From: Dicyema japonicum
Taxonomy: Eukaryota; Animalia; Dicyemida
Direction of reading: 5' to 3'
Length of the DNA: 33,000 nt
Assembly (NCBI GenBank): GCA_011109175.1
Contig: RDEW01000011.1
Span: 103,036-136,035 of the forward strand
Both the position numbers and the translations under genes were made by a program. Under the pieces are notes generated by a model. It saw only the letters and a list, made by a program, of their open reading frames with translations, did no database searches and had not been told where the DNA came from. Shown here one piece after another: positions 9,920 to 30,135 of the stretch. Position 1 is the first letter of the stretch. The number at the start of each line of letters is the position of its first letter.

Positions 9920-10395
9920 TGTATGTCCACGACAGATACCCTGATGGTTGTTACCTATCTAATAATGTTTTTATCGTACTCCCAGTCTATATATTATACC
10001 CCGTTTACAATTGCAACTTTCAACGTCAGAGGACTTTGTGGAGACGTGGGAGGCGGAAAGTTACATGATAAAACTGGTAGAACGGATAGTGAAGAGCACG
10101 ACACAAGCGTAACCCTATGTATTCATATGCTTATGGGTAACACGGGAGTGCATTTATTTAGAACCCCGGAATCACCGAGAAAGAAAGACAGAAAAAACGT
10201 CAGACAGTTAGGTAAACCCAGTTTCCGAAATCAAACGTATGTGGTCTCCCATTGTTCCCACTACTGTGCGAAAGAGCCTTCTCTCATCCCTGCAGAGGAA
10301 TCCGATTGGGGATGGGAACTTCCTGACCAATCGACCATTTTTTTGCCTTGAAAACCATTTGTGGAGTTTTCTCAACGGGAGTGCATTTAACTAAC
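9920..10395 (+). mobile_element. Chimeric or deleted LINE remnant: APE start joined to an I/Jockey-type C-terminus and 3' tail
   Basis: FTIATFNVRGL (APE motif I), then VSHCSHYC...WELPDQSTIFLP*, then the tail TTTTCTCAACGGGAGTGC. Confidence 0.6.
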
Positions 10396-10456: not shown

Positions 10457-11908
10457 TTAATTATTTCTGGATATTATGAGAATAATCAATATTAATGTGT
10501 TGAGCAGGAAGAAGATGAACAGGAATTGAGATCCTTTAACGACAATTTTAGTTTTTTGTTCTTTGGTCATTGTAGATTTGTTTTTATTTGACAAATTTGT
10601 TGATTTGATTTTTGTAAACTTTATTAAAGAATGAGTTGTCTTAGTGGTGTAATTATTTGTTAGTTTTTGCCAGTTCTAAATTTAAATCAAGTAAACTATA
10701 TTCGGATATATGCCCAACGTCGAATGCAATTCGATAAGAGAGGAAAAACTTTGCAGACATCATGAAAGTCGTTATAATAAAGAGTCCATACGAAAGCCCC
10801 GGCTATATTTACATTTCGAACAAAATTTGCCTATAATTATGTTGTCAATATTAAACTCTGGCGTGAATTGATTCCATGGATTCACAGCCTATCCAATAGG
10901 CCATATAAAACCCATGCTTAGTTTTAGTCATATTTTGCCAGTTTTCACAAATCTAAATATTTTCATTATATGTAACATCTGTCTGTAAAATTGATTTTTC
11001 GTCGGGATTATCGGTTACTGGTGAATTTTTTGATTCTCCTCTGTATGCATTACAATATGTGTGTACTCCCAAAACAATTTTGGGCAGTGGTACCCCATTA
11101 TTGAACCACAGCTTTAATGTGTTCTCCTAAAATGATTCGAATTAAATACAGCACAATCAGCGTTGTAAGAAGGACATGTTTTTCCCTGTGAAAAACTCAC
11201 CATTGATGTCACGATTAAATAATCGCAAAATCTATTTTACATAAATTAATGGTTCTTACGAAGAAATATGTGACATTAAACTGAATTCGTCAACAAATTG
11301 ATAAATCGTCGCAAGAAGCAAATATGTTTTGATAAATTTTTATTAAACTCACGATATAGAACCTAGGTCTTAAATATTAGAACTTTCATCAATAAAAAAT
11401 ATTTTTTGGGATTACGTGTATTTTCTATGTAAATATTGTACCCATCAAAATGGTATTTTTTGAGAAAATTTTGTACGTTTTCGGCAAATAGTAAAGTCGC
11501 ATTTTGATTGTGGGAAAGTATTTCAATTCTGTTATGACCGTAGCGTTCATAAAGTGTTAAAATTATCTTTAAATTGGGATTTATTAACTTCAGTGAATAA
11601 AGATCGTGGTATTTTTTGAATTCGCTCATTCTATTTATTTCATTATCATATTTTAAGGGAGCCGCTGGAATAGGAGATAGACTATCGATATCAACGTAAG
11701 ATTGATAATATATAATGTGGGTGCAGAGATATGGATAAATTTCACTCAATCTAATTTCACTGCTGAAATGATTCGCGGTTGTGCACATTAAAACTTTACC
11801 TAAAATTGCTGAAAATAATAACTATTTGGATCCATGTGCGTTGTAGGTATAGTCTAAATTATAATTTTGTAAAGATACGCTTATTATGTTTAAAATTAAA
11901 ACTAGCAT
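10457..11908 (-). CDS. GH18 chitinase-like protein, probably catalytically impaired, with a hydrophobic C-terminal tail
   Basis: IYPYLCTHIIY, LKLINPNLKIIL, FLKKYHFDGYNIYIE, WFNNGVPLPKIVLGV and AGAFVWTLYYNDF are GH18 motifs. Short hydrophobic N-terminus. About 8 tiny introns. C-terminus FLFIFFLLNTLILIILII. Confidence 0.85.
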
Positions 11909-20002: not shown

Positions 20003-20298
20003 AAATAATAAAGATAGTGCACTTTAGAGCCATATCACCTATGGCTCCATCCAGGCAGATCACACTTAATTTAAGTAAAGAACAATTATCATAACTAATC
20101 GTAGAAGGAGAACCAATGAATGCCCTTCCCTTCTTTTTGTTGCGTGTGAGTCCTTTGTAGACGATCCTGTTCGCAGTTAAATATTCATTGATGACGGCGT
20201 CTATCGTAAAGACAAAGCATCGTAGATGCATGGAACCTTCAACCGGAATTCGAACTAGGGACCATCAGGCCTTTGTCAGGCACTTGTTACACTGCTAT
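20003..20298 (-). mobile_element. tRNA-derived SINE, near full length
   Basis: B-box GTTCGAAT on the minus strand (about 20248-20255). Body and tail match the 16290 and 23985 copies. Confidence 0.85.
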
Positions 20299-20646
20299 CC
20301 ATAAAGGATTCGAAATAACCAACTGCGTTTGTTTTTAACCAATAAAAACCAAACTTTCGAAATGGGTAACAAAAATTTAAAACAACTTGGACAAGATTAT
20401 CAACCAGAAGGTCGACAAATATAAGATTTTATTTAAAGACTAAGAATCATGATTGTATTGAAAAAGGAAAGTGATCATTAGATAGTCCCTACCTCTTTAA
20501 TATCTAAGATCAGTCAACTTTTGTATACAATGATAGATAGTGTCCAACAGGTCGGCAGTGATCTGGCTTAGTACAAAAGCTCCACGTGCATAATGTCTTT
20601 AAAATGTAAAAAAACTGAAACAGCCAAAAAATTAAAAAACTCAATA

Positions 20647-23439
20647 TTAACTATCATCATCATCATCATTCAAAAGTGATATATTCATAATAGACTCATC
20701 AGACTCAAAATCATCACTCAAGTGAGGATTAAACGGTGAAGGAAACACAGTATTCTCCACATTAAATCTACTTGGGGTTGCCCCTACAATAACACAAATC
20801 ATAACCACTAGGACTGTACACCGATGGATTAACATCCAGAATCATAGCCTCCAATTTACTAAACATTCTCCCAAAATCATCATTAAAGGAATCAATCAGC
20901 TGATTGAACGCAGTAACATAGTCACATCTGTTCTTCTCTAGCTTGGTCCCCTCTTCTCTATACTTATCCATTAATTCAATAGAAGATTTAACAAAAAGGT
21001 CAAAACACTCGCGTTTCGCCTACAATAAAACACGTGGATGTACCCTTAGAGGTATGTTCACATCATTCTCCAACTTTTTCCACACCTTATCGAACTCTCC
21101 CTCATAGTGTCGAAGTAATGATTCTAACGTAGCACAGTGAGCCAGTTTCTCGCTCCCAACCTTCCTCATCGAACCCAAAAAATCGTCCACCACCCCAATA
21201 AAGGCCTTATAATTATTCTACAATAAGCACATGGTAACTTTTGAATCGATGTCTCTAACAACCTCATCAATCTTCCTCACTACACGCCTAAACTCAGACC
21301 AGTATTGAGTCAACGACAAGGAAGCCTCAAATCCCTCCAAATCATATTGATGGTAGACGTGGTCATCGAATGTGTGGTGTCTGTTATATTCACTTGCTAT
21401 ATCCGTGATTATCTACATGCAAATAACCCATACATTTTTGAAGTCCCTAACCGACTTATCCACATCTGCCAGACACTTCTCCCTCTCCAAGTAGTTTGGA
21501 GTCCTCAGCTTCTTCAAAAAATTCTCCCTCAGGGACTTCATAGCCTCGTTATATGCATCTCCATTGAGCTTGATGTCACGGGTTAGCGACGCTATATCGT
21601 TTCGTAGTTCATCTGTATTTGATGATTCATCCACAAACGCGCCAATCTCAGTGATTCGAGCAGAATTAATCACTAATTGACTATTTATGGATCTTCTTTC
21701 CGCGGCCTACTATTATTAACGGCGATAACCAGCAAATCGTCATTTTTTTCACGGAAAGTCCTCACTTTCTCATTTATTCCGTCTTTCGCTAAACAAACAG
21801 AGTGATCCACTTCAGAAATCAACGAAACTGAGACTTTGCTGATTACATTTTCTAACGACATCCTTTCCTCATCGAATACGTTGTTGTACTCGTATAGAGA
21901 ATGTACTCGGTCAGTAAGGTACTCAATTTCCCGAAAAATTCGTCAACGTAGGATATCATATCATTTAGGTGGTGTTCCGCCGCAGAAACAAAATTTCGCT
22001 GTGTTTTTTCATTCCTTAAGTCAATTTCAGAAAATCCCGAACGTACCAAGTCCAGATTATCCCTTATTTCTTTGATATTCGCCAATTCCTCTTTCATGGA
22101 GTCCCCAATATTCCTCAAACGAGTAAATATCTCCAGTCTCTTCTCGTAAATATGTTTCCGCCTTTCATGTTCATTTTGTTTATGTACAATCTGTTCTCTA
22201 AGGTCCAATAAGGATCTCCTCAGCTGATCTACGTCCTCCCACTCCCTGCTAATTTTCTCCTCAGTCTCCTTTATGGTTCGACTCAGCTGACGGGAGACTT
22301 CAACATACTGCGATATTCCTGTACGGAAACCTCAGAGACGATTCTCTCGCGATCCTTGATCTCCATCTTCAGGTCCATGGTCTCCGTAATCCGAAAGTCC
22401 AATTCATTAGTCATTGTTTCATGAACCTGAGAATTCATTACAATCGTTTGATTCTCTGTCAGTTTACCCCATTCTTCCTTTAATCGCCCAATTTCAGCGT
22501 TAAAAAACTACATTCGATATTTACTAATACTTTTTCTGGATCACTGGTCTTGTTTGGTGTAATAACGTGGGTAATACCCCTTATCTTCCTCGCAAAACAC
22601 ATCAGACGAATGGTTCCCTCCAAACATGAGGCGGCTGGGGATATTGAGAAGATGAAACTGTTCATGTTGGTTTCCTACCAGCGATTCTCTCAGGTATTTT
22701 GTCAGCCGTGACTCCTTGTATGGGACATATGTGGCTTTTATGTATAACGAGTTCAGGACATCTTCAAATACGGAGAGATTTGATCCTAGAGCGGTTTTTG
22801 TGTTCAGGTTGTCCGATTCGTTGTATATAAACGCAAGAACGAGTGTTCCAACGTCAGTACTCCCTTCATGAGGAATAATTACAGTGATTGTGAAAATTGA
22901 ATGCCCAGAGACCACTGGGGTGATCTTTGAGTGTCTCAAGTATATGATCCACATCCTTCATATATGTTATAGTAATTTCAGTTGGGGTTCTAGCTAGACT
23001 GTGTTCTTCTAATTCATCCTCCTTTATAAGGTTTAAGTTCCCTGTCACTTAGGTGGATAGCTGATATTCGTACGGCTCTCTGGACAGGGCCATAACTCTG
23101 ATACGATAAAAGAAAGTATCTTAGCTGAGTGATTTTCGGAAGAAATATCTAAAACAGTATGGTTGTAGCCGGCGATGACGTCCTTTATAAATTGAGAAGC
23201 AAGGGACTTCCACGCGTCAAATGGGAACAGTTTTTGCTGAATATTTTGTCGAATCTGAAGGTCCGTCGTAAGGATCTTAGCAGTTTGGGGTCGTCTATAG
23301 ACAATTCCTTGTTTGTCCGCCTGTTTATTACATCTCTGGAGGTTTCTGATTCAACATCAGTGAGATTCCTTATATTAGAGTTAAATTATTACTTTATTTT
23401 GATATAAACAGGACATGTTACAGAAAGTTCAGAAAGCAT
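20647..23439 (-). CDS. KIF11: Kinesin-5 (BimC/Eg5)-like protein with a degenerate motor, coiled-coil stalk and BimC box; several apparent frameshifts
   Basis: RTFRFDKIF, DVIAGYNHTVL, HSIFTITV, YVPYKESRLTKYLRESL and ISPAASCLEGTIRLMCFA are kinesin motor motifs, followed by a long heptad-rich stalk. The spliced tail VYSPSGATPSR (22-nt intron at 20784-20805) is a BimC box. Confidence 0.82.
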
Positions 23440-23984
23440 TGTTCAATATACGCAAGTTTATTTTTATTTAAATTATTTATTTTTAATATTAAGTTTTTAT
23501 TTATTTTTTAAATGAAGATCACGGAGACTTTCAAAATGTCGAGTGACGCGAGGATCTGGACGGGTTTCCATGTGAGTCACCTGTTGATGAAAAAACTGCT
23601 TACATTTTTAGCGAACAGACCCAACTGATTTCCCTTACCAAACAACTATCAAATAGTTTGTTTGGTAGTGGTTACAGGATGAGCCCCGAGCTACGTTTCC
23701 AGATTTCTTTAATCAACAGTGGTGATGTTGAACATTACCCTGAAACCAAGTAATTTCAGCGCAAGTTGAAGATAATCCACATGAAGATCAACGTAGTTTC
23801 CAAAAATGTATTGATTTACATAACTTATTGCACATCATTGTGTGGATATTTCCATTATCAAGAAACTAAGCTTACACCGTAATCCAAGACTCCTTGCTTC
23901 AAGAACATTTTGTATTACGTTCCGACCGCGCCTTCAGTCTGTACACATTTCTATTCCTTTTGCTGATTATTCAACTTTTATTGA

Positions 23985-24295
23985 GGATCCGCAGTGAACG
24001 GTCGCCGGGTAAGAGGCCTGAAGGTCGCTAGTTCGAATCCTGGTACTGTATATATCGGTTGAATTTCCACGCACTCTATGCTTTGGCTTGACGAGTGACG
24101 CCGTCATCAGTGAACATTTCACTGCGGAACCGGATCGTCTATATAGGACAACAAAAAGAAAACAAAAGTGAAGAGCATATTTGATTCTTCCTCATCGAAT
24201 AGTTATGATAACTGTTCTTTGCTTAAAATAAAGTGTGTGTTCTGCCTGAGGGAGCGATAGCTTATATGGCTCCTCGGAAAGTGCTTTGTTTGTTA
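23985..24295 (+). mobile_element. tRNA-derived SINE, near full length
   Basis: Consensus B-box GTTCGAATCC at 24031-24040. Body and tail match the other copies. Confidence 0.85.
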
Positions 24296-25527: not shown

Positions 25528-27772
25528 ATGTTTCTGATTAGTCGTTCGGCTCGAATATTTCGTCTTGATGCTTTGAAATCTTCAACATTCACCAGCAGAC
25601 ATATCGGACCTTTTCCAAAAGATGTGCAGAAAATGCTGGAGATCATCAAAGTCAAGGTTAATCGATTTTATGACATTTAGGATTTGGATCTAGTCAAAAA
25701 TGTCGTACCTGCTGATATTTTACTCAACCGAAAACTAAATATTCCGCCAGAACTTAGTTGAATTATTTTTTAAAGTCAAAGGCGAATCTGAGGCACTAAG
25801 AGGCCGAAAGGATATCAAAAATGAACACTGTGGGAAGGTCCTTTATTGGAATGGGGTACCACAACTGTAATATCCCCACTACAATAATCAGAAACGTGCT
25901 GGAAAACCCTGGATGGTTATATAACCCCTTAAACTCGTTAGGTACACCGCCTACACTCCATACCAGGCTGAGATATCCCAGGGACGTCTGGAGGCTCTCT
26001 TCATATTCCAAACAGTCATCTCGGACCTCACAGGACTACCATTTGCGAATGCTTCACTTCTTGATGAGGGCACAGCGGTTGCCGAGGCAATGGGAATGGT
26101 TTATCGGTTGGATTTATGATCATTTTAGAATTACTAAACGGAAGAAATTCTTTGTTGACCAGTTCATTGACCCTCAGACACTCTCAGTTGTTAACACAAG
26201 GGCCAGGTCTTAAGTTTTTATATTTAGACTTTTTGGCTGGGATGTTCAGATCGGAAATTTGCTTACAGATTCGATCTCTGGTAACACTGCTGCCGTCGTA
26301 TTTCAATATCCAAATACTTTTGGGAACATCATTGACAGATTCGATCTCGTCCCTTATTAAACCGACTGGAGAATTCGGCGTTGATATTGCAGTCGGGTCT
26401 TCTCAAAGACTAGGTCAGCCAGTCGGGTTTGGTGGACCACACGCAGCCTTTATTGCTTGCAAGAAAGAGCACGTGCGTAATATTCCAGGAAGAATAGTCG
26501 GACAGACAGTGTTTGTTTGATTTTTAGCAGTTCAGTACCAACGACGGAGAGAAGAGTTACAGATTGGCTCTGCAAACTCGGGAACAGCATATCAGGAGAC
26601 AAACGGCCACAAGCAATATCTGCACGGCTCAGGCACTTTTGGCTAACTTGTGTTCGTTTTACTGCGTTTACCACGGAAAAGAGGGGTTAGAGTCATTGGC
26701 TAAGAGGGCAAATTCCAATGCCCGATTTTTAGCGAACCGTATACTTTCTGAAAATATTTAGAACTGTCCAAGAATGGATACAAGATAGCGTATGATGACT
26801 ACTTTGACACCATCACAGTAAAAGGAGGTGAAGGAATTCGTCAAAAATACACGGAACAAGGATATGTAAGGTTGATCGATTAAGAAGTAGGTGGTTGTTT
26901 CATTGGATGAGACTGTAACCCATGTGGATATGGCTTCTCTTTGCAAAATATTTGGGGTTGACTTTGAAGTATTGGTTTTGTTTATTTTATGGTTAATGAG
27001 TGGTTGAACACGCCCTTCTCCATAAAACAAAGACGGCACTCACAATTCCTTACTGACCAAATATTTAGAGAGTATTCCCACTATTGACACGTGTAGTTTC
27101 AAGTCGGAGACGGAATTTATGAGGTTTGTGAAAAAATTGTTAAATAAGGACATTTCGTTGGTCCATTCGATGATTAGTCTGGGATCCTGTACGATGAAGC
27201 TCAATTTTCTGGAGGAGATAATATTGTAGAGTTTTGTGCCCACGAGTTTATAATCAATTTAGAGGAGTTCAGCAAGTCCGCAAAGATCGATCCAGTCGAC
27301 GTGGCCAAGAGATTGATGGATTACGGTATTCAGGATTGTTTCAGTTTAGGGTACCATGCCCCACGACGTCTTTTCCACTGAAGAATGTGCTGATGATTGA
27401 GCCCACTGAGTCTGAATCGTTGGGTGAACTCGGCAAATTCTGTAACGCTATGATCTGTATTGGGGATATTTACAGGTAAACCATCCGTGGAGAGATCGCT
27501 GATATTGAAAATGGACGAATGGACCCAAAATTTAATCCACTTAAGGTTGATGTCTTATATCTAGGTTAAGATGTCCCCACATACAGTCCGGGTGGTCTGC
27601 TCCTCTCATTGGGACCGTCCGTACTCCCGAGAGACGGCAGCCTTTCCATCGGTTGCTACTCCTCAGTAATTTTTAGAAACTGATTAGTCCATCTAACAAA
27701 GTCTGGCCTGCTGTTGGACGTGTCAATGAGGTTCATGGAGACCGGAATTTGATTTGCAAAATTACCAATTGA
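25528..27772 (+). CDS. GLDC: Glycine dehydrogenase (glycine cleavage P protein), internally deleted as assembled
   Basis: [103 protein letters not shown] and [13 protein letters not shown]. More than 10 tiny introns. A large central segment is missing. Confidence 0.95.
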
Positions 27773-29569: not shown

Positions 29570-30135
29570 CGTTACAGGATCATCTGTGAAGATAAATATG
29601 AGAGGCTACTGAAGCAATCAAACCAACACAGACGTGCCTGTCTAGTTACTGAAGATGCGAATGGAGTGGCGCTTGGATCTATGCCCTCTCCGTTTGTAGT
29701 GTCGGGACCCACCTTGACGACGACACTGTCCGCATCGGCAACTCCATCAGACTTGGACTGAAGATTTGCCAGACAAATGCTGGTGTGGCAGCACCGTCGA
29801 TTGTTATGGACATCATGCCCTTTCTTGTCGAAGAAGTGCAGGACGATTCCCAAGACATAACGAAATTTTTAAGCGAGCCCTGGAGTCTGCTGGATACCCC
29901 TCCATTCTTGAACCTGTTAGCTTAGACAGAGGAGACGGAAAACGGTCTGGCGGAATCACAATTTTCTCATTCGAGGAGGGGAAACTTTTGGTCTGGGATG
30001 CTACTTGTGTCGACCCTCTTTGCCCATCCAACATTGTCGGGAACGTGGTAGAGACACTGCATGCCGCGGAAATAGCGATGAGGTGAAGATAAAAAATACG
30101 AAGCTCTACGCGACCAATTTGCGTTCTATCCCACA
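29570..30135 (+). mobile_element. CRE-clade element remnant (CCHC knuckle plus RLE)
   Basis: SGAWIYAL...HLDDDTVRIG..IRLG, CWCGSTVDCYGHHALSC, RFPRHN, ILEPVSLDRGDGKRSGG (RPDG degenerate), LVWDATCVD and KIKKY. Confidence 0.88.

Follow-up and report, generated by a model that had tools for sequence, protein, structure and literature searches.

A probable kinesin-5-derived gene of Dicyema japonicum with a lost nucleotide pocket, a retained microtubule-binding face and ultra-short introns

Kinesin-5 and its non-catalytic relatives

Kinesin-5, a drug target, is the canonical motor for spindle pushing. Among its relatives, non-catalytic ones have been described as partners of kinesin-14 and as members of kinesin-4 and kinesin-11, KIF26 being a non-motile kinesin-11. 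A BimC box with a Cdk1 site is a defining feature of the kinesin-5 tail (PMC10523502). Here we describe a kinesin-like gene on the minus strand of a 33,000-nucleotide stretch of Dicyema japonicum DNA (contig RDEW01000011.1, positions 103,036 to 136,035; referred to as the window), where it occupies positions 20647..23439. An earlier note on this DNA had described the locus as a motor-dead kinesin-5 that keeps its microtubule-binding loop and BimC box. A literature search found no non-catalytic kinesin-5 and no paper on dicyemid kinesins, and kinesins are not mentioned in the supplements of the D. japonicum genome paper. We consider it about an even chance that the locus is a kinesin-5-derived pseudo-motor gene, the product of which would bind microtubules independently of nucleotide, oligomerise through its stalk and be controlled through a TP site in its tail, and that the breaks found in its reading frame are peculiar to the assembled copy.

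Kinesin-5/BimC proteins (Eg5/KIF11, KLP61F, Cut7 and BimC) are built like the predicted product: the motor-type head is N-terminal, coiled coil comes after a neck-linker-like segment, and a long stalk precedes a short tail carrying a Cdk1 site of the form (S/T)GxTPx(K/R). The Dicyema protein differs from them in that the P-loop, switch I and switch II have been lost and loop L11 is shortened, and it is shorter overall, with approximately 871 amino acids compared with 1000-1100. Its stalk has no detectable likeness to the bipolar assembly domain, and its head lies far below the similarity normal for the family. Vik1 and Cik1, the partners of the kinesin-14 Kar3 (PMC4338441, PMC3384419), provide a parallel, in that they have a kinesin-fold head without a nucleotide site and microtubule binding is possible in both cases; a hetero-oligomer with a catalytic paralog is also conceivable here. 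The heads of Vik1 and Cik1 are, however, C-terminal and have lost the recognisable kinesin motifs, whereas the head described here is N-terminal and has a recognisable L12/alpha5 element. KIF7/Costal2 (PMC12919046) and KIF26 are alike in being kinesin-derived microtubule-binding scaffolds or regulators rather than transporters. KIF7 differs in being a kinesin-4 with its nucleotide pocket kept (PMC12919046); KIF7 and KIF26 both lie outside kinesin-5, and in neither have all three motifs been lost so thoroughly. A dead kinesin-5 with a microtubule face, a stalk and a Cdk1 site would reveal those functions of the family that are independent of the motor (cross-linking, braking and tail-mediated targeting), and would also show how an animal of approximately 30 cells divides with a reduced toolkit.

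Alignments to solved and canonical kinesins bore out the claim of the earlier note that all three nucleotide motifs are replaced in place, and all the strings that it quoted (GYNHTVLDISSENHSAK, VVSGH, LAFIYNES, VPYKESRLT, YSPS and ATPSR) are present on the minus strand. The P-loop equivalent, GYNHTVLDISSENHSAK (23120..23170, minus strand), lacks GxxxxGK[ST] and has DISSENHSAK in its place. In a pairwise alignment to a canonical kinesin DISSENHS fell on GQTSSGKT, and the coding DNA, as had been noted, contains no GG after the first GGC. At switch I (22901..22915, minus strand) SSRSH is replaced by VVSGH, and at switch II (22814..22837, minus strand) DLAGSE is replaced by LAFIYNES, followed by the shortened L11. 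HMMER alignments to solved kinesin-5 heads paired GHSIFTI with SHSVFT, the end of switch I, and LVLAFIYN-E with LNLVDLAGSE of switch II; the switch I pattern SSRSH and the switch II pattern DxxGxE are thus absent from the window copy, which has VVSGH and FIYN-E instead.

To these alignments we added read contigs over positions 20400-23600, derived from four runs on two samples of one organism. The contigs contain no joints and so are DNA-like, and they were counted only at 95% or more identity to the window. They cover the P-loop, where three variants were seen (K>E, S>F and H>Q), none of which restores the motif. Because every read variant covering the P-loop also lacks GxxxxGKT, the dead P-loop is not an artefact of assembly; the canonical GxxGxGKT, which the earlier note had named as a sign that its reading was wrong, was found in none of them. 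By its sequence the window copy has lost its nucleotide pocket, and the P-loop is dead in every read variant that covers it. We find it scarcely credible that sequencing errors mask an active motor, with a true gene encoding GxxxxGKT, SSRSH and DLAGSE. The window does differ from the reads by indels, and the switch I/II stretch (22754-22967) is covered by no read contig of at least 95% identity. The three substitutions in the reads over 23120-23170 are, however, not directed toward Gly or GKT, the DNA of the P-loop is devoid of GG whatever the frame, and intact switches would not rescue ATPase activity without a P-loop.

The microtubule-binding face has fared differently from the pocket. The alpha4-L12-alpha5 segment, LGSNLSVFEDVLNSL...VPYKESRLTKYLRESLVG (22670..22786, minus strand), is the only part that matches Pfam Kinesin (PF00225), the match being confined to profile positions 246-297. 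It includes the L12/alpha5 string VPYKESRLT (22726-22700). When VPYKESRLTKYLRESLVG was compared with IPYRESKLTRLLQESLGG, 11 of 18 positions were identical (16 of 39 over alpha4-alpha5 as a whole); the corresponding figure for the pocket motifs is 3 of 17 (p = 0.015). This difference supports selective retention of the putative microtubule-binding L12/alpha5 element relative to the pocket, and such uneven loss is the pattern that would be expected from selection for microtubule binding without catalysis, and not from neutral decay.

Beyond alpha5 lies a beta8/alpha6/neck-linker-like segment, ISPAAS...ARKIRGITHVITPNK (22549..22644, minus strand), which is in frame with alpha5 only after a 1-nucleotide deletion at 22667 that the reads support. 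The stalk (21044..22507, minus strand) is rich in charged residues and leucine and resembles a coiled coil, with no detectable similarity to solved kinesin-5 stalk structures. Nor did the stalk, tail or neck pieces give a meaningful match when searched against Pfam and solved structures; for the stalk this carries little weight, since coiled coils diverge fast. The BimC-box consensus is (S/T)GxTPx(K/R). A BimC-like motif, SGATPSR, is encoded at 20764..20809 on the minus strand, interrupted by an intron (SG|ATPSR); the two halves of the split string are YSPS (20818-20807) and ATPSR (20781-20767). The motif occupies residues 826-832 of the 871-residue model, 45 residues before the C-terminus, and its TPSR fits the Cdk1 consensus. 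It arose by chance with a frequency of 5.5e-4 (110 of 200000 shuffles). The gene ends in a GAT repeat (20647-20674) coding for a run of Asp (NDDDDDS).

Membership of kinesin-5 is probable but not proven. The language-model neighbours of the Pfam-matching piece are all kinesin clusters, with scores below 0.9. In a search of solved structures with an 82-amino-acid head piece the five best matches were all kinesin-5 proteins (Ustilago, Cut7 and Plasmodium), approximately 3 bits above kinesin-1. The family assignment of the earlier note is thus favoured by the five top matches and the BimC-like site, and weakened by the narrow margin. That the locus is a dead kinesin from some other family or an orphan kinesin, with the BimC-like motif and the kinesin-5 matches as coincidence, would account for that margin and for stalk and tail exons that match no Pfam family and no solved kinesin-5 stalk. 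We regard this as improbable, given that the five best matches come from one family, that an N-terminal motor is followed by a stalk of approximately 450 amino acids and a short tail, and that the tail carries a motif so rarely produced by shuffling. The neck, in which EIGRLKEEW follows ...HVITPNK, is also one that we take to resemble that of kinesin-5.

Ultra-short introns and breaks in the reading frame

In a three-frame translation of the minus strand from 23500 to 20500, the kinesin-like text shifts frame many times. The gene model that we built runs from an ATG at 23439 to a TAA at 20649-20647, the same ends as those given in the earlier note, and has nine exons and eight mini-introns, all on the minus strand. 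With these introns removed and the read-supported indels described below applied, it comprises 871 codons. Intron 1 (23369..23392, 24 nucleotides, GT..AAG) contains two in-frame stops. Intron 2 (22508..22530, 23 nucleotides, GT..TAG) directly follows the neck-linker-like HVITPNK...PEK and moves the frame into the EIGRLKEEW coil. Intron 3 (22308..22330, 23 nucleotides, GT..CAG) has a possible 17-nucleotide alternative in the same phase. Introns 4 (21707..21729, 23 nucleotides), 5 (21413..21433, 21 nucleotides), 6 (21218..21238, 21 nucleotides), 7 (21020..21043, 24 nucleotides) and 8 (20784..20805, 22 nucleotides) are all GT..TAG; intron 5 is in phase with a stop at its end, and intron 8 splits the Gly codon of the BimC-like motif. 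All eight are thus GT..AG elements of 21-24 nucleotides, and six end in TAG. Stops lie inside each of the four introns whose length is divisible by three, and after the other four the open frame resumes downstream in a shifted frame. Once the mini-introns are taken out, all the stops and shifts of frame in the stalk and tail disappear. The earlier note had recognised one of these introns, the 22-nucleotide element at 20805-20784 that splits the BimC-like box, and that element holds up; it is one of eight and not the only one.

Independent evidence for such introns came from the neighbouring gene for glycine dehydrogenase (GLDC) on the plus strand of the window (25528-27772). Human GLDC is matched up to residue 113 by one of its exon pieces and from residue 116 by another; the two lie 32 nucleotides apart, a distance made up of two codons and a 26-nucleotide GT..TAG element, with the frame shift that this predicts. 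Several further GT..TAG elements of 19-26 nucleotides link conserved GLDC pieces. Because homology brackets the 26-nucleotide element on both sides, ultra-short introns are real in this genome. Animal introns shorter than 30 bp have been reported only in myxobolids (myxozoans) and in D. japonicum (PMC13644364), and the introns of the window, of 19-26 nucleotides with a minimal GT(a/t)...AG form, are like those described (PMC13644364; PMC6736024). The GC content of the window, approximately 37%, is closer to the 36.7% of the D. japonicum assembly (PMC6736024) than to the 29% of Henneguya, and the read sets bear dates of 2017 and 2019.

Other explanations of the shifting frame were rejected. A processed (retro-) pseudogene would not carry eight phased mini-introns, and no A-run follows the stop. 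Reassignment of stop codons, as in ciliates, was dropped since all internal stops vanish with GT..AG mini-introns or read-supported indels, and is also disfavoured by the animal-like neighbouring genes. A path of fewest introns found ab initio was not accepted as evidence: such a path always exists, GT..AG pairs of 18-45 nucleotides being very common. For GLDC this path passes through wrong frames, and for the kinesin of the window it yields an 830-amino-acid frame by means of five extra introns, ending in CAG, AAG or GAG, that delete conserved segments. Annotation of genomes with ultra-short introns calls for caution on two counts: changes of frame are often introns of 21-26 nucleotides, and this assembly also has conserved genes broken by indels of a single base.

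Six breaks in the window copy, at approximately 23217, 23075, 23031, 22916-22919, 22667 and 21917 on the minus strand, are not explained by introns. The earlier note made no mention of them, and the window copy is not one readable frame. At break 1 (23217..23218) the reads have an extra C behind 23217 that links RTFRFDKIFSKNCSHL to DAWKSLASQFIKDVIAGYN, so that RRTFRFDKIF...SHL continues into DAWKSL...GYN. At breaks 2 and 3 (23031..23076) the reads add CT behind 23075 (or TT, or GA at 23081) and TC behind 23031, which brings VRISAIHLSDRELKDLI, at the position of the beta4 'VSxxEIYNExxxDLL', into frame. Break 4 (22916..22919) is a 1-nucleotide excess in or beside a CCCC run between LKDH and VVSGH, a site over which there is no read contig of at least 95% identity. 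Break 5 (22667) is repaired by one T fewer in the reads, RESLVGN then continuing into ISPAAS...ARKIRGITHVITPNK (alpha6 and neck linker), and break 6 (21917..21918) by an extra G behind 21917, after which the stalk reads through. Read contigs thus have indels at five of the six sites, and each brings back the kinesin frame defined by homology. The spliced coding sequence with the five read changes is 2617 nucleotides long, an excess of one nucleotide, and with an X placed at break 4 the model is one uninterrupted frame of 871 residues. In 2000 shuffles of the coding sequence the number of stops averaged 60 and did not fall below 31. A frame open over 871 codons would therefore not have survived long neutral decay.

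The window allele is missing at four of the break sites even from the deepest run, which retains minor variants elsewhere. Four of the six breaks fall in short homopolymer or dinucleotide runs, and indels in short runs are typical of errors in a long-read consensus. A comparable defect is present in a conserved part of GLDC, where a C-run (27358-27362) is one base short between ...DYG[Y]HA and PTTSFPL...EPTESE. The flanks of this run match residues 818-847 and 850-883 of human GLDC in different frames, with no room for an intron, which suggests, on the sequence of the region, that the assembly contains indel errors. The published D. japonicum assembly was made by merging a PacBio Falcon assembly with an Illumina one (PMC6736024).

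Diverged copies, selection and the status of the gene

The read contigs are 96-97% identical to the window over 21805-23304 and 99.5% identical, without gaps, over 20955-21820. From 21805 rightward the reads are 3-4 times as deep, and at this position contigs branch to a different in-frame sequence, SEVD being followed by FQYKLYCNEK in the reads and by HSVCLAKDGINEK in the window. Beside the stretch that no contig covers (22754-22967), the read copy has YDYNLLKAPTEITIT where the window has EEHSLARTPTEITIT. The step in depth and the branch together indicate that at least two diverged copies or haplotypes of the gene with a dead P-loop exist. Within the window no second copy of the kinesin gene was found, nor does the window contain the other 3′ sequence that the reads show. 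Compared with the window, the read contigs show four small gaps in the A-rich 3′ flank (20419-20771), and read depth rises approximately 17-fold at 23503-23600, pointing to another repeat. Divergence in the coding part is at least 3-4% and mostly nonsynonymous, against flanks that are 100% identical; a paralog family, gene conversion and diversifying selection are possible explanations.

One extension of these observations, which we consider unlikely, is that the locus belongs to a small and fast-diverging family of dead kinesin-5 paralogs that would act as Cdk1-regulated static cross-linkers and might have replaced active kinesin-5. It is suggested because at least two copies have identical flanks and in-frame divergence that is patchy and mostly nonsynonymous. 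If true, this would be the first pseudo-motor branch of kinesin-5, and spindle assembly would have been reorganised around a protein that is no motor.

For the codons of the model we counted the substitutions that separate the read contigs from the window, the counts pooling several contigs and samples and leaving aside 11 differences that were not listed. The 3′ part has six nonsynonymous and five synonymous differences (omega approximately 0.3-0.4, not significant). The remaining counts belong with a number of findings that weigh against a gene held open to the present day. Overall there are 28 nonsynonymous and 9 synonymous differences, giving an omega of approximately 0.9-1.2 with or without transition bias, and a value of 0.2 was rejected at p < 1e-6. 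The 5′ part alone has 22 and 4, respectively (omega approximately 1.6-2, an excess over 1 that is not significant), and the replacements are not more conservative than chance would give (p = 0.27). Purifying selection between the copies is thus not seen. The 99.5% identical 3′ part is free of the five resolved indels, all of which cluster in the 5′ part, where divergence and depth are high; this is as compatible with a decaying copy that has truly diverged as with assembly error. The read contigs may themselves be the majority consensus of several copies and so look intact even if each copy is decaying. The Pfam Kinesin match, obtained with exon fragments only, reached 27.5-28.3 bits against a cut-off of 29.3 (E approximately 1e-6). 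No orthologous or paralogous protein was found among 15 billion proteins: a representative-protein search with a 137-amino-acid head piece gave five weak matches only, and nothing was found with a 130-amino-acid stalk exon in a word-indexed protein search or with the tail exon in a protein atlas. Among the public runs of the organism no run recognisable as RNA was found. To these are added the six breaks of the copy as assembled.

Many of these points are shared by the main rival, which we rate as a serious though less likely possibility: the window contains a decaying pseudogene, one of several recent copies of an already dead kinesin-5-like gene, with real breaks and no translation of this copy, or else all the copies are now in decay. 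It would explain the breaks, the omega of approximately 1 with replacements that are not conservative, the location of the indels in the substitution-rich part and the missing RNA run. The higher depth and the branch at 21805 would then reflect extra copies or very divergent haplotypes, and regional gene decay is possible in that the neighbouring GLDC is also damaged, by its 1-nucleotide frameshift and the absence of its catalytic core. Symmetric neutral decay, however, would place all five resolved indels on the window side, where they appear as derived changes, with a probability of only approximately 1/32. The absence of the window allele from the deepest run at four sites, at a depth that retains minor variants elsewhere, and the position of four breaks in short runs both argue for consensus errors, and the 3′ 1.2 kb is unbroken, with five intact in-phase introns and 6 nonsynonymous against 5 synonymous differences. 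The earlier note had held that an untranscribed locus with real frameshifts and a dN/dS near 1 would speak against its interpretation. Both the breaks of the window and the omega do so; the absence of five of the breaks from the reads does not. What stands of the motor-dead kinesin with a kept microtubule loop is the loss of the pocket and the retention of L12/alpha5, while present constraint between the copies finds no support.

The head is near the edge of detectability, yet the consensus frame and all eight pairs of splice sites are intact. Because of this, and because the pocket retains 3 of 17 identities against 11 of 18 in L12/alpha5, we favour long-term selection on the locus: the gene appears to have been held open long after the pocket died, and it may now be a non-catalytic microtubule binder or a decaying copy. 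Under the pseudo-motor reading, this would be a genuine spliced kinesin-5-derived gene in an animal genome with ultra-short introns, and the P-loop, switch I and switch II would long since have disappeared from its motor domain. Selection would have kept the long frame, the eight phased mini-introns, alpha4-L12-alpha5, the coiled-coil stalk and the BimC-type Cdk1 site. The product of approximately 871 amino acids would bind microtubules without ATP turnover and serve as a cross-linker or brake of the rigor type; the lost motifs predict that it has no ATP-driven plus-end sliding. Oligomerisation would probably take place through the stalk, and the TP site of the tail would target or regulate the protein. 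Microtubule binding, oligomerisation, control by Cdk1 and a present-day function are all predictions from sequence features, and a role as a brake or as a hetero-oligomer partner is purely inferential. The six breaks of the window copy would stem from errors in the long-read consensus or from mutations in a single haplotype or paralog, and would not belong to the gene that the public reads represent.

Neighbouring genes and repeats

The N- and C-terminal parts of GLDC are well conserved and contain many GT..TAG introns of 19-26 nucleotides. The gene jumps from ...SCTMKLNF (27208) to 27241, so that approximately 280 residues including the PLP-binding core are missing; either the gene died recently or the assembly is defective here. 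An open reading frame (ORF) at 11363-11788 on the minus strand matches glycosyl hydrolase family 18 (35 bits). Its catalytic DxDxE stretch reads FDGYNIYIE, and by appearance the product is chitinase-like without the acidic catalytic residues. Two ORFs on the plus strand, at 9923-10351 and 29766-30086, gave no Pfam match at E <= 0.01; they have an endonuclease-like N-terminus ('TIATFNVRGL') and a Cys/His-rich tail, and we take them to be non-LTR retrotransposon-like fragments. The kinesin gene is bracketed by inverted repeat copies at 20066-20272 and 24014-24231, which are 82-87% complementary and lie approximately 350-550 nucleotides outside the gene on each side. The repeat contains a tRNA-like box, GGTTCGAATCC, and is probably a SINE.

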